DNA of 63,988 bases, the filler included, from Pelomyxa schiedti (Eukaryota > Protista > Evosea), in assembly GCA_020536535.1 (NCBI GenBank). It is 6 parts of 6 records of this genome, joined end to end, with 100 filler letters (N's around TTAATTAATTAA, not from the genome) between each part and the next. Parts side by side here need not be neighbours in the genome. Positions count along the whole stretch, not along the records: positions 48,259 to 53,388 come from JAHLWZ010000055.1; 5 more parts are not named here. One strand, given 5' to 3'. Below, piece by piece: positions 9,001-53,388 of this stretch. Below the pieces are notes generated by a model. That model worked only from the letters and a program-made list of their open reading frames with translations. It searched no databases and was not told the DNA's origin. The position numbers and the translations under genes are program-made. Every line of letters begins with the position of its first letter. Positions within the stretch are counted from its first letter, which is position 1.

Positions 9001-11405
9001 TTTCAGAGACATGATGGAGCTGTGTTCCACAGCAAAACAGCATTTGCCCGCAATGTACCACACTGATGGACAGAAAACCACAGCTGAGAGTACCACACCC
9101 AGCTTGAAGCTTCTTCAATTTGGGAAGTTACTTAATTGGTGCTTCACTGGAGATTCGCAGCACAGCACTGTAGTCACATTTGATTCCCTTTTTTGGTCTT
9201 ACTTTTTTCCAGTTTCTCAAAATGGTTGCTAACTTCACTGAATTGCTGCGTGAGGTGGATGCGAGGCACTGCAACCTCGATGAAAGCAAAGTTGAAATGG
9301 TTAATTTGTTTTTAAACGACACAGCTCACAAATGTATCAGAACAGATTGCTGTTATCTGCATGTGACAAAATTCCTGAGGTGCTAAAGCATATGGTTACT
9401 ACCTGTTCAAGTTGGTTAGCTCAATTCCACGTACGTTGAATGACATCATCACCCTTCTGTGACCACGCACTATAGATCAGTTTGAATACTACCAAGGAGT
9501 ACACAAACTTCAACGCTGTATGTTCTTCTCAAATCTTACTTCTCTAACACTGGGAAACAACAAAAAAGAGAGCAACCCCACCATACTATGGAACAATCTG
9601 CTTGATGTGCAAACACAGCCCCGAATTCTTGCACTTGTTTGGTTTCCACGTTAATTTGCTCTGGGCCTCACGTCACATTCTCTCCTCTGCCTTTTATATC
9701 CCTGAAGTATGCTTTCAAGTTCCAAACACTCAGACTCACCCCTCTAGGCTGCAGACTCCATTCTCGAGATTCTACATATGGCAGCTAATAATCATGATTG
9801 GAGTGCGGAGTTCAGATCGAAGACTATCCCGAGTGTTGTAGGAGCGTGTGCCAATTTATCTGAAAACTCCACTTCAGTTCTGAGGTATTACCTTCATTCT
9901 AGAATGCTTCTAATGGTCCTGCAGTGCCTTGAAAGTGCTGATGCAGACCGAACCTGATCAAATAGTGTTCTGTACTTGTAAACCTGACTCATGTGCAGCC
10001 ATACAAGCTATTCTCAACGTAAAGTCTTTCTTACTTTGGTGAATCTTACGTGGTTTCCAGTTTCTTAAACTGCACCACAATACTGGGCATCTGGCTGTGT
10101 CAGCTGGAATAATTGAGCCTGCACTGTGTGTTCTCTCACTGGCTACCCAGTGGCTCAACAGAACTACACCAGACCTTGCTGACATGAAAAAATTGTTCAT
10201 AGAAATTATGAAGGGTACCACACTGGTGTGTCTCCGTTTTTCGGGTTCTCAGACCTCAAATTCTCTTCCAGGATGAGCTTACTACTTGTCTGCACGGGAT
10301 TTTGAAAGAGATTACATCTTCTCCACAAACCTCACACTTACACGATGTTGTTGAACAAAGTTCATCTATCTTAATGACACTTTGCAGGTACGTTCTCCAT
10401 TGGTAGTTTGTTTTCCTCACAGCCAAGGTGCAGACTGAAAGAGTGTTGTCTGGCCTACACAGTGAACTGTCTCCAAAAAGAATACATCTCTGCCTCCAAC
10501 GCGCAATACATTACCTTTGGCCAGGAGGCCATGAAACTTTATATGTCTAGTTCTCTCACAAAGCCGTCTCCTGATCCTCGTTCTCTGGAAATTGGATTTG
10601 ACTATAGTATGAAACACCCTGTATCACAGGTCTAATTTCTGATAGTGATTGATTCAAGTTTGCGGCAGCCCACAGTTGGCGGATTGGGATTTCTTTGTAC
10701 AATTTTGGACTCCGTGCCCCAACCTGACTTTCTCATTGAAACATTGTGGGCCGGCTCTATGAAGTTCCAGGGGGTCTGGCATGATTTGCTTTCCGGCAGC
10801 ACTAGTAGCAGTTCTATAACACCCTTTTTTATCCGCTTTTACCCTTTGGTGTGGAAAAGCCCCCTCTCCTTTTCCTAACTGGTTTTCAAGGTTTCCAAGC
10901 TGTTGTCTGAGAACCTCAAAATTAATGTGAACGAGCACTTATGGCAGCAGGTGCATTCTCTGGTGCATGATTCCGCGCAACTACCCCAGGAAGAGCTGGT
11001 GCCATTAATGAACGTGTGTATTGCTTAAACAATCCTCCGGCTCCTAACCTCCGCTCCCAGCTTATTGCTCAACTGCAAGCCTGCTCCCATGATGCTGTAT
11101 TCCTACCTCTTCTCAAATCGAGCCAGACCCACTCGGACCTCCTCGCCAGGCTAGCTTCCCAAACAGCCGAGCTACCCGCATGCTCCACCTCCACTACTAC
11201 CACAACTACACTACACACCGAAACCGGGTCCGCAACTCCCACCGGTGCGGCCTCCACAACAACAGACCTTAGTACCGCGTCCACAGCAGTACTTCCGGTA
11301 TCCACTACAACTGCTCCAACACTCCCAACAACTATCACACCGTCCACAGCCCGTTCATACATACATGAAGCCACCAAGTCCATTCTGGCACTGCTTATGC
11401 CGTAA
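1..11405 (+). CDS. Large ubiquitin carboxyl-terminal hydrolase (USP/C19, USP9X/24/34-like); many introns, 5' end probably outside the window
   Basis: Cys box GLSNLGATCYMNALLQQLYMH (~5836-5898), QMDADEFF (~6126), His box YDLVGVLVHSGTAESGHYYSYIRER (~6761-6835), KRFEYDF/KVNDLYEFP motifs. Continuous + strand exon chain with short introns ending at TAA 11403-11405. Confidence 0.9.
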
Positions 11406-48158: not shown

Positions 48159-48723
48159 NNNNNNNNNNNNNNNNNNNNNNNNNNNNNNNNNNNNNNNNNN
48201 NNTTAATTAATTAANNNNNNNNNNNNNNNNNNNNNNNNNNNNNNNNNNNNNNNNNNNNGTTCCGTGATTATGTTGTCACACAGGCCGCGACAACTAGATC
48301 TTCCACCACAGTCAAGTTGTGGCTTGGTCTGCCCATTGATTAAAGCATGCCTCCACCATGGCCCTCGCTGTCTCATTCTTGTAACACTCAGATTCGAACT
48401 TCAATCTCCCAGTATTGAGGCTATTGCTATTAGTGTGTAGTTTGTGGTGTGACGGCAAAGGTTTGAGTAGTGATTCTAAGGTTGGACAGCGTTACGGTCT
48501 GTTGATTATTTTATTCAGTCCTGAGAAGCCCAACTTACCCACAAATCGAAACAAACAACAAACAGAACAAATTATTGAATCTCTTTCTTGATCTTGCTTG
48601 TTCTCTGGCCTTGTCGTCACACAACGAACTTCACATCCCACACACAGATAACCAAGCTGAGATGAATTTGCACTGGGCAAGGCAACAACAAATCACAGGT
48701 GTCTGTTCGCTGCAAGCAAAAGG

Positions 48724-50330
48724 ATGAAAGTTTCGTTGTTTGTGTCGGTTGCGTTGGTAGCTGCGGTGGTGGAGGCGACGGAGTTATGGGACAGCACCAA
48801 AATGCCGGAGGACACGCCATTTGAGGGCTTTGAGACGATGTACAATAAACATTATGGGTCCGAGGGTGAGAGGGAATACAGGAAGGCTGTGTTCACCCTC
48901 AACATGGTATTTATAATATAGACGGCCACTGTGTTTGTGATTTTTGTTTGTTTGGTTTCTTATTTCTTCGCGCGTTCGTTTGGAGCCTAACACTTTTCCA
49001 ACAAGGTGAAGGCAAAGGAGTGGAATGACAGAGATGGAAGGAAGACTTATGGAGCTTCGCCATTTGCTGATATGACAGCGGTGCAGTCAATTATCTGCCC
49101 GCATTCCTTGTTACTTTTTTTGTTCACTGCCTTGGCAGGAGGAGTTTCGATCAAGCAGGTTGATGGCACCTGCCGATGCTGAGTCTCTTGCTCGTGCTTG
49201 CATGGAGGCAGGTGTTTATCAGCCCACCCCGGCTCCGGTTTCTGTTCAGATTGATGACTCCTTTGACTGGCGAGACACTCCTGGCGTGGTGCAGTCCGTG
49301 AAAGATCAAGTATGATTCTTCTTCCACTCCTAGGTTTATTTCTGATCATACCTTTTTTTTTTTATTTCCTCAGGCAAGTTGTGGAAGCTGCTGGGCGTTC
49401 AGCACAGGTAATACCAGTCTTTTTTTGAAGATTTGGCTCTTATTTTTTCCCATAAATATTAGTTGAGGCCATGGAAGGTGCGTATGGAATTGCAGGCAAA
49501 AGTGTTGAACTCAGTGCCCAGTTTGTAACAGACTGCAGCAGAGGTTAAAATGCAGAGGAGTTGTTGTTAATTAAAGTGTTTTTTTAGGGTGCTCCTCTGA
49601 GATTTATGAAGGAGCGAATACCACTGTCTGCAACAAAGGTATCCCGGCCCCGTTCTTTTCAAAATTTTCAATTTGTGGCCGCCAGAGTGCAGTGGTGGGT
49701 GGCCATGGACCGCCTTGAATGACATTGCCACACAAGCAATCGGCGGCGTACCTCTCTGGAGTGAGTACCCATATACAGGAGCCTATGAGCAGTGCCGCGA
49801 TGGGAACTACTCTTATTCCTTCCGGGCGAACATAACTTCATACACCTGCCCCAATCTTGACAAGGTTACTTTCACTTCCTTCATTTTCTTCTGAGAATGA
49901 CCTCGGCATCCAGGGCACCAAAGATGAAGATGTAATGGCAGACAGTCTCAAGCAATACGGGCCGCTATCCATCGCAGTGAATGCGGAGCATTTCCAGTTG
50001 TACATCAGGGTTCGCAATCTATTTCTATTCTTGTCCTTGAGAAAAATTTACAATCCCCGCAGGGCATTATGGACCCTGTATTCTGTGATACGACCTACCT
50101 TGACCACGCGGTTCTTCTCGTTGGGTGGGGGATAGACAAGGACCCACTGTTCTTGAGCGATGATCCTTACTGGATTGTCAAAAACAGCTGGTATGCTTTC
50201 CAGTCACAAAACTACCGCAACAAACAAATCACACAGGGGATCAACATGGGGTGAGGACGGCTATCTCCGCATGGCACGCGGCAATGGATGTTGTGGAATC
50301 AATCAGGCTGTCACTGCAGCCATTTTATGA
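48724..50330 (+). CDS. Papain-family (C1A) cysteine protease with signal peptide and I29-like propeptide
   Basis: MKVSLFVSVALVAAVVEA; DWR..VKDQ|ASCGSCWAFS; LDHAVLLVGWG; YWIVKNSW; WGEDGY..CGIN. Confidence 0.93.
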
Positions 50331-50495
50331 GGAGGCAAGGGGGGACACACCACAAAAAAGCGGTATCACCCATAAGTACTGCGATGCCGGTTTTCGAGAT
50401 CAAAAAAGGGAAACAGTCCCTCGATTATCTCTGGAGTGCTACTTAAAATAAATTCAAATATTTGAATTCTTACCCCTGAGCTCTGGTGATACTTC

Positions 50496-50570
50496 GCATG
50501 TGGCGCCGAAGACCTGGGTTCGATTCCCAGCTGTCGACAATGTTGGCAGTAGTTTAGAGGTAGAACTTCG
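50496..50570 (+). tRNA. Putative circularly permuted tRNA-His(GUG): 3' half 50496-50538, linker AAT, 5' half 50542-50570
   Basis: Re-joining the halves gives G-TTGGCAG TA GTTT AGAGGTA GAAC T TCG|GC ATGTGGC GCCGA AGAC CTGGG TTCGATT CCCAG CTGTCGA C, with all four stems paired. Flanks are complementary and a T-run follows at ~50597-50607. Confidence 0.78.
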
Positions 50571-50662
50571 CTGTTTCACCAATCGCAGCCACTCCCTTTT
50601 GTTTTTTATTTTGCGGCCATTTCCGAAAAAAAAACCGGTATTCAATTTGACAAAGAAATCTG

Positions 50663-51170
50663 ATGGACCCAAGCGGTGGCGCAACGGTTCGTAGTTGTAT
50701 GTTATGTTTTTTTTTACAACAACCAAATTAGAAAACACCGTATTGTTCCGAGGAACAAAAAGTATTAATTCTTTCAGCATAATTTGTGTGCTCAAATGGA
50801 AAGGAAAATATTGGCTGTTCTTGGGACACCAACGAGAGGCGTTGATAATGACAGCACCAACACAGCAGAGTACATCAGGCGAATAGTGAGTGCATCACGA
50901 ATTGTGTGGGACAATGTTGTTGCCGGTGGGTGGTTGTGTCCCCTTTCCTCAATGTACTGCCCCGAGGCTTACTCGTTCAGTCCAGGTCAATCCCTCCTAT
51001 TTGTACTGTTCATTCATTAATTCTTTATCCAATCCAGGTTGGATGAAGAGGAGAGAAAAACTTATGGCTGAGTACCGCTTTTTGTTGTGTAAGTTGGCTC
51101 AGGCCATGTTTCCACTTGTACCGAGGGTTGTGCGTGTACTTCAGGAGCTATACGAATGCAAGTCCTACTG
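50663..51170 (+). CDS. 5' part of hypothetical protein (IVSASRIVWDNVV..AMFPLVPRV), truncated by gap
   Basis: Spliceable + strand exons; repeated at ~52861-53388. Confidence 0.5.
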
Positions 51171-51270
51171 NNNNNNNNNNNNNNNNNNNNNNNNNNNNNN
51201 NNNNNNNNNNNNNNNNNNNNNNNNNNNNNNNNNNNNNNNNNNNNNNNNNNNNNNNNNNNNNNNNNNNNNN

Positions 51271-52546
51271 AGCTTCGCCATTTGCTGATATGACAGCGGT
51301 GCAGTCAATTATCTGCCCGCATTCCTTGTTACTTTTTTTGTTCACTGCCTTGGCAGGAGGAGTTTCGATCAAGCAGGTTGATGGCACCTGCTGATGCTGA
51401 GTCCCTTGCTCGTGCTTGCATGGAGGCAGGTGTTTATCAGCCCAACCCGGCTCCGCTTTCTGTTCAGATTGATGACTCTTTTGACTGGCGAGACACTCCT
51501 GGCGTGGTGCAGTCCGTGAAAGATCAAGTATGATTCTTCTTCAACTCCTAGGTTTATTTCTGATCAGATCTTTTTTTTTTATTTCCTCAGGCAAGTTGTG
51601 GGAGCTGCTGGGCGTTCAGCACAGGTAATATCAGTATTCCATGAAGATTTGGCTCTTATTTTTTCCGATAAATATTAGTTGAGGCCATGGAAGGTGCGTA
51701 TGGAATTGCAGGCAAAAGTGTTGAACTCAGTGCCCAGTTTGTAACAGACTGCAGCAGAGGTTAAAATGCAGAGGAGTTGTTGTCAATTAAAGTCTTTTTT
51801 TAGGGTGCTCCTCTGAGATTTATGAAGGAGCGAATACCACTGTCTGCAACAAAGGTATCCCGGCCCCGTTCTTTTCAAAATTTTCAATATGTGGCCGCCA
51901 GAGTGCAGTGGTGGGTGGCCATGGACCGCCTTGAATGACATTGCCACGCAAGCAATCGGCGGCGTACCTCTCTGGAGTGAGTACCCATATACAGGAGCCT
52001 ATGAGCAGTGCCGCGATGGGAACTACTCTTATTCCTTCCGGGCGAACATAACTTCATACACCTGCCCCAATCTTGACAAGGTTACTTTCACTTCCTTCAT
52101 TTTCTTCTGAGAATGACCTCGGCATCCAGGGCACCAAAGATGAAGATGTAATGGCAGACAGTCTCAAGCAATACGGGCCGCTATCCATCGCAGTGAATGC
52201 GGAGCATTTCCAGTTGTACATCAGGGTTCGCAATCTATTTCTATTCTTGTCCTTGAGAAAAATTTACAATCCCCGCAGGGCATTATGGACCCTGTATTCT
52301 GTGATACGACCTACCTTGACCACGCGGTTCTTCTCGTTGGGTGGGGGATAGACAAGGACCCACTGTTCTTGAGCGATGATCCTTACTGGATTGTCAAAAA
52401 CAGCTGGTATGCTTTCCAGGCACAAAACTACCACAACAAACAAATCACACAGGGGATCAACATGGGGTGAGGACGGCTATCTCCGCATGGCACGCGGCAA
52501 TGGGTGTTGTGGAATCAATCAGGCTGTCACGGCAGCCATTTTATGA
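51271..52546 (+). CDS. Papain-family cysteine protease, second copy or allele (5' end lost in gap)
   Basis: Near-identical to 49053-50330. Confidence 0.88.
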
Positions 52547-52693
52547 TGATAGAAAAAGCGGCATCACCCATAAGTACTGCGATGTCGGTTTTCGAGATCA
52601 AAAAAGGGAAACAGTCCTCGATTATCTCTGGAGTGCTACTTAAAATAAGTTCAAATATTTGAATTTATTAACACTGAGCTCTGGTGATACTTC

Positions 52694-52768
52694 GCATGTG
52701 GCGCCGAAGACCTGGGTTCGATTCCCAGCTGTCGACAATGTTGGCAGTAGTTTAGAGGTAGAACTTCG
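52694..52768 (+). tRNA. Putative circularly permuted tRNA-His(GUG), second copy: 3' half 52694-52736, 5' half 52740-52768
   Basis: tRNA body identical to 50496-50570; leader 52674-52690 pairs with trailer 52771-52786. Confidence 0.78.
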
Positions 52769-52860
52769 CTGTTTCACCAAGCGCAGCCACTCCCTTTGTT
52801 TTTTTATTTTGGCCATCTCGAAAAAAAACCGGTAATCAATTTGACCAAGAAGAAAGAAAT

Positions 52861-53388
52861 ATGATGGACCCAAGCGGTGGCGCAACGGTTCGTAGTTGTA
52901 TGTTACGGTTTTTTTTTTACAAAGACCAAGTTAGAAAACACATTATTGTTCCGAGGAATACAAAAAGTATTAAAATATTTCTTTCAGCATAATTTGTGTG
53001 CTCAAATGGAAAAGGAAAATATTGGATGTTCTTGTGTGACACCAACGAGAGGCGTTGATAATGACAGCACAAACACAGCAGAGTACATCAGGCGAATAGT
53101 GAGTGCGTCACGAATCGTGTGGGACAATGTTGTTGCCGGTGGGTGGTTGTGTCCCCTTTCCTCTTCAATGTACTGCCCCGAGGCTTACTCGTTCAGTCCA
53201 GGTCAATCACTCCCCTATTTGTACTGTTCGTTCATTAATTCTTTATCCAATTCAGGTTGGATTAAGGGGAGAGAAAAACTTATGGCTGAGTACCGCTTTT
53301 TGTTGTGTAAGTTGGCTCAGGCCATGTTTCCACTTGTACCGAGGGTTGTGCGTGTACTTCAGGAGCTATACGAATGCAAGTCCTACTG
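52861..53388 (+). CDS. 5' part of hypothetical protein, duplicate of 50663-51170
   Basis: Same exons as the first copy. Confidence 0.45.

Follow-up and report, generated by a model that had tools for sequence, protein, structure and literature searches.

The window, that is, the whole stretch of 63,988 nucleotides that was analysed, comes from the genome of the giant, free-living amoeba Pelomyxa schiedti. The piece at positions 48259 to 53388 (JAHLWZ010000055.1) contains, in order, a cathepsin gene, an RNA element of about 165 nucleotides, the first part of a second spliced gene, and, beyond a gap of 100 N, a repeat that is nearly identical. The host, which the original prediction had placed probably among the Amoebozoa, is indeed P. 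schiedti, and one exon of the cathepsin matches KAH3767386.1 without a difference. The cathepsin, a papain family protein encoded at 48724 to 50330, was matched to that accession by this single exon, and its short GT-AG introns were confirmed by RNA. Just upstream of it, 48485 to 48596 is a very high-copy sequence, whose summed depth in the DNA runs reaches 9500 versus 60, and it may be a genome-wide repeat or a promoter motif. The gene on the other side of the element is unannotated; it starts within 50784 to 51170, an intron at 50981 to 51032 is seen in RNA, and two exons gave no Pfam match. Since both neighbors of the element are spliced, as seen in RNA, and since, at even depth, overlapping DNA contigs of two runs extend from the cathepsin through the element into the next gene, the element is nuclear and is not derived from a symbiont.

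The original prediction had described a single copy at 50476 to 50607. The element with swapped halves is real and was correctly located, but its limits, as given by RNA contigs, are 50433 and 50597, and a second copy that had been missed lies at +2198 nt (Table 1). The two copies are identical over 50476 to 50582, and the core shows 1 change in 122 alignment columns, while the 199 columns downstream of it hold 11 substitutions and 22 columns with gaps. They could be a tandem pair, or two alleles that the assembly set one after the other across the 100-N gap. A second, partial cathepsin copy at 51271 to 52546, after the gap, may likewise be an allele scaffolded in tandem.

The core carries the two halves of a tRNA in inverted order, and when each half was re-read in place, the earlier reading of 50496 to 50570 proved exact. 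The 3' half (50496 to 50538) comprises an anticodon loop with GTG at 50500 to 50502, an AGAC variable loop, a T arm, and the 3' acceptor strand. It is linked by AAT (50539 to 50541) to the 5' half (50542 to 50570), which comprises the 5' acceptor strand, U8A9, a D arm at 50552 to 50566, and TTCG. The predicted acceptor helix of 8 bp is recovered as a hairpin. Swapping the halves does give a full cloverleaf, and ARAGORN calls the sequence joined at 29/30 tRNA-His(gtg), with a perfect 5-bp anticodon stem. On the unrearranged sequence, ARAGORN found neither a tRNA nor a tmRNA at the locus. When it was run over all possible joins, hundreds passed, so ARAGORN cannot fix the junction.

RNA contigs from two single-cell runs, X3 and X4, cover the element as one unspliced colinear molecule, and the neighboring DNA at 50611 to 50806 has no RNA contig in either run. 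At the 5' end, the template-switch oligonucleotide precedes G50433 in X4, and X3 starts at the same base; at the 3' end, A tails follow 50596 or 50597. By year, study, and type, X3 and X4 are probably libraries of a published study (PMC10579272) that were A-tailed in vitro, so the A tail need not be natural. The alleles in the RNA contigs match copy 2. Contig depth, a poor gauge of level, is 100 to 600 for the element versus 4 to 9 for the cathepsin mRNA. The transcript begins 63 nt upstream of the 3' half, and the AT-rich stretch that had been taken for a TATA-like upstream promoter is therefore internal to the RNA, where it folds as a hairpin; there is no TATA within the 70 nt before 50433. 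The T-run noted downstream was correctly seen, and the RNA ends at its first base.

The RNA contigs also carry marks of a kind known from tRNAs. In X3 and X4 alike, the RNA contigs lack U20 (T50561), which no DNA contig lacks. Three RNA records (19, 24, and 25) have one unlisted mismatch and a fourth, record 20, is clipped to 50524 (3 letters), from which we infer, on the basis of the contig tables, that the RNA contigs are altered at A50523, which is A58. acp3U20 and m1A58 are known to leave such marks in reverse transcription (PMC13210174), and the marks at U20 and A58 on the full-length RNA, as read from contigs, resemble those of modified tRNAs. There is a contig break in X4, absent from X3, right after C73 (50538), where depth falls from 163 to 97, and one in X3 after U8 (50550), where depth also falls; CCA-added ends or a modified A9 might be the cause of these breaks.

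Table 1. Features of the Pelomyxa RNA element, in positions of the window.
Feature	Position	Strand	Remarks
Whole ncRNA, copy 1 (~165 nt), probable YrlA-type tRNA mimic	50433..50597	+	X3/X4 RNA contigs; fold z -2.85
Whole ncRNA, copy 2	52630..52795	+	Alignment; alleles of the RNA contigs match this copy; fold z -3.51
Terminal stem, 5' strand (GGAGUG)	50433..50438	+	Pairs with 50590-50595; coincides with RNA ends
AU-rich internal hairpin (formerly "TATA-like")	50446..50472	+	7 bp in copy 1, 11 bp in copy 2
Long closing stem, 5' strand, with bulged C50483	50476..50489	+	Pairs with 50576-50588; T50583G in copy 2 restores a pair
UAC-UUC linker	50490..50495	+	Counterpart of YUAY, the conserved start of the YrlA V region (PMC4201824)
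Anticodon-like hairpin, positions 41-43, AGAC variable loop	50496..50513	+	Pairs 30-31/39-40, loop A32 U33 GUG G37 C38; same geometry in Ro60-linked RNAs
T arm (B box)	50514..50530	+	A58 = 50523, inferred to be altered in RNA contigs
Closed 8-bp acceptor hairpin, AAU loop, G-1:C73	50531..50549	+	Pair probability 0.99; 8 bp common in homologs
U8A9, D arm (A box), 26, and 27-29	50550..50570	+	27-29 pair with 41-43; U20 = 50561
3' linker and 3' strands of closing and terminal stems	50571..50596	+	
T-run, probable RNA polymerase III terminator	50597..50607	+	RNA ends at first base

The colinear RNA can itself adopt a tRNA-like form, in which the chain is open, or nicked, between positions 29 and 30 of the anticodon arm. 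The order of T arm, acceptor hairpin, and D arm was recovered in 0 of 3000 dinucleotide shuffles of 2.9 kb. The bases of the tRNA tertiary contacts are present (U8, A14, G15:C48, G18G19, U54U55C56, and A58), and a UAY precedes the V region. The ends of the RNA pair in a terminal stem of 6 bp (probability, 0.98), none of 200 shuffles folded as well as copy 2, and a 7-nt direct repeat (50491 and 50565) stands on both sides of the tRNA body. At the nick, nearest-neighbor folding slightly favors a local hairpin over cross-pairing, whereas comparative evidence favors the 27-29/41-43 cross-pairing; the two forms may both occur. As a fold, the cloverleaf nicked at 29/30 is real.

Homologs were sought with DNA patterns. 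A strict pattern made of the T and D arms of the element yielded seven loci, all seven of which have a closed acceptor hairpin and a closing stem; strict patterns run on metagenomes and bacterial genomes gave nothing. In the closest match, L009, a TROVE/vWA Ro60 gene follows the RNA, 230 nt downstream, and the RNA also adjoins an RNA ligase. This contig is phage-like, and its RNA, which has a tRNA-like domain, occupies 9020 to 9160 on the minus strand, the Ro60 being 688 amino acids long. This RNA also has a stem resembling that of animal Y RNAs. A looser pattern gave 109 loci, 24 with closed-acceptor RNAs and the rest (about 85) with tandem tRNAs. The latter, together with a BLAST match (H2), are ordinary tandem tRNAs and served as controls. 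In the 24 closed-acceptor RNAs the acceptor hairpin covaries at all 8 pairs. A third pattern, which joined the arm before the T arm to the T arm and held no letters of the D arm, found closed-acceptor RNAs in 15 of 30 bacterial and 3 of 5 viral loci. A TROVE gene was present in the retrieved DNA of 13 of the 15 closed-acceptor loci from bacteria versus 0 of the 15 others, and of 12 of the 24 in the viral set versus 0 of the 85 others, in counts for which locus classes were set by eye and rows are partly redundant. The search patterns themselves were built from letters of the query, and related rows cannot be counted as independent. These searches turned up no eukaryotic homolog, and the leader, trailer, and flanks of the element had no significant match in the retrieved homolog loci.

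The homologs share one anatomy: a closing stem, UAC-UUC, a small anticodon-like hairpin, a T arm, a closed acceptor hairpin, and a D arm. The common arm reads UAC-UUC-GN-[7-nt loop]-NC-GAAG, with U33, a purine at 37, positions 41 to 43, and a variable loop of 4 to 5 nt, and in L137 it matches the Pelomyxa arm length for length. Across 17 RNAs, a set whose filter left out four Y-like rows and took in one ordinary tRNA, pairing across the nick was found for 27-43 in 15 and for 28-42 in 15 (shuffled means, 8.5 and 11.2), with compensatory C-G, U-A, and G-C variants, and 29-41 is paired in 7 of the 17, often being A.G. L139 and two L122 RNAs combine, as the Pelomyxa RNA does, complete pairing across the nick with broken pairing to the local UUC. 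The triplet at the anticodon position takes 14 values in the 17 RNAs; A32, which the original prediction had called atypical, occurs in two of them; and G-1:C73 is also found in homolog L015, which has a Ser loop. Given the conserved pairing across the nick, the free triplet, A32, and G-1:C73 with a Ser loop, the cloverleaf nicked at 29/30 appears, from comparison of sequences, to be the fold of a Ro60-linked RNA family in organisms without a reported splicing endonuclease. Clusters of two to five YrlA-like RNAs, all under the Rfam cut-off, lie by TROVE genes in L122 (4169 to 5884), L131 (6884 to 7501), L132 (4856 to 5094), and L114 (2600 to 3180), and L122, from Rapidithrix thailandica, also carries a T4-type RNA ligase.

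Y RNAs that mimic tRNA have been described in bacteria and phages (PMC4201824; 10.1101/312249), and YrlA in particular has its domains in the order V, T, acceptor, and D, bears tRNA modifications, and is encoded near Ro60 (PMC4201824). YrlA (RF02553) was also the best Rfam match of the Pelomyxa RNA, at 28 bits (E, 0.006) and again at 23.9 bits, both below the gathering cut-off of 69 bits; the Ro60-adjacent homologs fall below it as well, at 36 to 52 bits or less. A covariance model of our own (R1) gave the Pelomyxa RNA 57 bits, and it was not used as evidence because Y-like RNAs and tandem tRNA junctions (45 to 64 bits) overlap in score. With YrlA (RF02553; PMC4201824; 10.1101/312249), the Pelomyxa RNA shares the order of V/anticodon-like hairpin, T arm, closed acceptor hairpin, and D arm, the paired 5' and 3' ends, and the conserved UAY ahead of the V region; its closest homologs adjoin TROVE genes, and the marks on the full-length RNA, as read from contigs, may correspond to the tRNA-type modifications of YrlA. 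Unlike YrlA, its gene is eukaryotic, nuclear, and set between intron-containing genes, and the RNA is longer (165 nt), has an AU-rich hairpin in place of the 5' Ro motif, ends in a T-run, and is marked at U20 and A58. Its 5' stem lacks the Ro60-binding motif GNCGAAN0-1G, an AU-rich segment of about 40 nt occupying that position, and the only match, at 50505, falls in the anticodon-like arm; the exact motif is likewise missing from several homologs that adjoin Ro60. There is no TROVE gene within the 5.1-kb piece, and a Pelomyxa Ro60 was not among the matches listed, in lists dominated by bacteria; an operon-like linkage of RNA and Ro60 is unexpected in a nucleus. The His features of the RNA (GUG, G37, and G-1:C73) also count against this assignment. 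We consider it likely that this amoeba carries in its nucleus, and expresses, a tRNA mimic of the YrlA type, probably gained by lateral transfer from a bacterium or phage. With the 5' Ro motif missing and no Ro60 adjacent, it is best described as built like YrlA and probably descended from one, rather than as a proven Y RNA.

Two other RNA types bear a partial likeness. Metazoan Y RNAs share the end-to-end stem, a bulged C in the stem (here C50483), and the oligo-U end; unlike them, the Pelomyxa RNA has no GGUCCGA motif (PMC4030889), and they have no evident tRNA-like domain (PMC4201824). Two-piece (permuted) tmRNA (RF04321) also has the T arm before the D loop. A tmRNA was rejected, as ARAGORN finds none and the RF04321 match is weak (15.9 bits), and unlike these tmRNAs the Pelomyxa RNA lacks G3:U70, has a full D stem, and carries an anticodon-like loop and no tag reading frame.

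That the element is a functional permuted tRNA-His gene, as originally proposed, now seems unlikely. On that account the 165-nt precursor would be cut and ligated at 29/30 into a circle, which RNase P and RNase Z would open within the AAU loop before CCA addition yields tRNA-His. GUG, G37, and G-1:C73 are consistent with His, the ARAGORN call on the joined sequence points the same way, a CCA-added 3' end could explain the X4 break exactly after C73, and the modification-like marks fit as well, since tRNA precursors can bear modifications. No ordinary gene with these halves was found among the DNA contigs, and one further 5.7-kb contig in which an ordinary tRNA was sought held none. Wang et al. 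(10.1101/312249) remarked on the likeness of YrlA RNAs to permuted pre-tRNAs and on their possible processing. The permuted genes of Cyanidioschyzon, prasinophytes, the Bigelowiella nucleomorph, and Thermofilum (PMC3978253) likewise place the 3' half first and share the short linker that closes the acceptor, the pairing of leader and trailer, and the downstream T-run. They are cut at a bulge-helix-bulge (BHB), at 15/16, 20/21, 37/38, 50/51, or 59/60 (PMC3978253), whereas 29/30 is outside the known junctions and has no BHB, strict or relaxed, the central helix having 2 of 4 pairs and the flanking helices 0 and 1. No other junction combines a BHB with a sound tRNA; the 37/38 junction, which would give tRNA-Glu (UUC), has a C30xC40 mismatch and no BHB. 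Also unlike the permuted genes, the Pelomyxa locus has no TATA in the 70 nt upstream of its transcript, the promoter-like AT stretch being itself transcribed, and the RNA is seen unspliced. The same fold occurs in bacteria, for which no splicing endonuclease has been reported (10.1101/312249), and the UAC-UUC that would be a disposable leader recurs in Ro60-linked bacterial and phage RNAs. Nuclear tRNA-His nearly always has A73, G-1:C73 being of the bacterial or organellar type (PMC4338351), and G-1:C73 is also present in L015, with a Ser loop. The predicted joint of 50570 to 50496 (G29|G30) is missing from RNA and DNA contigs alike, and no circular form is seen, which is weak evidence because the libraries barely catch a 76-nt or circular RNA.

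A second alternative, which we judge very doubtful, is that the mimic arose within Pelomyxa from a tandem tRNA-His pair, is unrelated by descent to YrlA, and has a role independent of Ro60, for example as a HisRS decoy or a partner of TEP1 and the vault. The retained His features, the 7-nt repeat flanking the tRNA body, and the lack of a Ro motif and of an adjacent Ro60 would suit such an origin, and a dimeric-tRNA origin, possibly more than once, has been proposed for YrlA itself (10.1101/312249). Against it stands the agreement in detail with the bacterial family in the UAC-UUC-GC..GC-N-GAAG arm, the position of the nick, and the lengths of the linkers. As to the vault variant, a vault RNA was rejected because no vault family of Rfam matched at E values as high as 10; in vault RNAs box A precedes box B. 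Most improbable is that the element is a nonfunctional relic, a misassembly, or symbiont contamination, for although the assembly is single-cell amplified, the contig short, the host rich in endosymbionts, and the two copies possibly alleles set in tandem across the gap, the overlapping DNA contigs at even depth, the defined ends of an RNA beside DNA without RNA, and the conservation of the core relative to the DNA downstream all speak against it.

If the element is a YrlA-type mimic, RNA polymerase III would transcribe it from G50433 and stop in the T-run, and the T arm, closed acceptor hairpin, D arm, and two-strand anticodon arm nicked at 29/30 would assemble into the L shape of a tRNA, whose elbow host enzymes would treat as tRNA and modify at U20 and A58. 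The long stem, predicted to exit the anticodon arm at 29/30 and unite both ends of the RNA, might by analogy with YrlA be the handle for a TROVE-domain protein (Ro60), and the tRNA-like end might dock an elbow-binding partner in RNA quality control, surveillance, or repair, as proposed for YrlA. The handle and the docking step, drawn from this analogy, are the weakest part of the mechanism and are only somewhat probable even if the rest is granted. The GUG triplet would then be one of many interchangeable loops and not a decoding anticodon. The 8 acceptor pairs would allow nicking by RNase P or Z and CCA addition, as in Mycobacterium smegmatis YrlA, which is so nicked and given CCA (PMC4201824); the X4 break after C73 hints at this, without a repeat in X3. 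It is quite unlikely, even so, that enzymes of the amoeba have turned a laterally acquired bacterial Y RNA either into an aminoacylated mimic made of two pieces or into a working tRNA-His, the latter by joining at 29/30 without a BHB and then by RNase P/Z cleavage and CCA addition.

In the searchable literature, outside whose coverage most subscription papers lie, we found no report of a tRNA-mimicking Y RNA in a eukaryote. If the assignment is right, the gene for a structural noncoding RNA has crossed into a eukaryote and been adopted by its transcription and modification enzymes, and the Pelomyxa RNA would offer a handle on the Ro60 ligands of single-celled eukaryotes and on the proposal that Y RNAs arose from tRNA. 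Many Ro60-linked bacterial RNAs under the Rfam cut-off appear to retain a complete two-strand anticodon arm, which bears on any contact they may make with a ribosome or synthetase. Were a Y RNA indeed converted to a working tRNA-His, it would be a living link from Y RNAs to permuted tRNA genes.

Some minor observations concern other small RNAs. Three phage loci, L002 (3893 to 4080), L043, and L086, encode closed-acceptor RNAs with a UUCAGCAA motif in the 5' loop; they had no TROVE match in the retrieved DNA and are possibly a separate subfamily with another partner. Beside both copies of the Pelomyxa element (50661 to 50716 and 52860 to 52919), the same 39-nt stretch has an A-box-like core and a hairpin and is followed by a T-run of 9 to 10 nt. 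It has no RNA contig in X3 or X4 and no significant match, and it could be a second small RNA or a promoter element; bacterial Y RNAs do occur in clusters.
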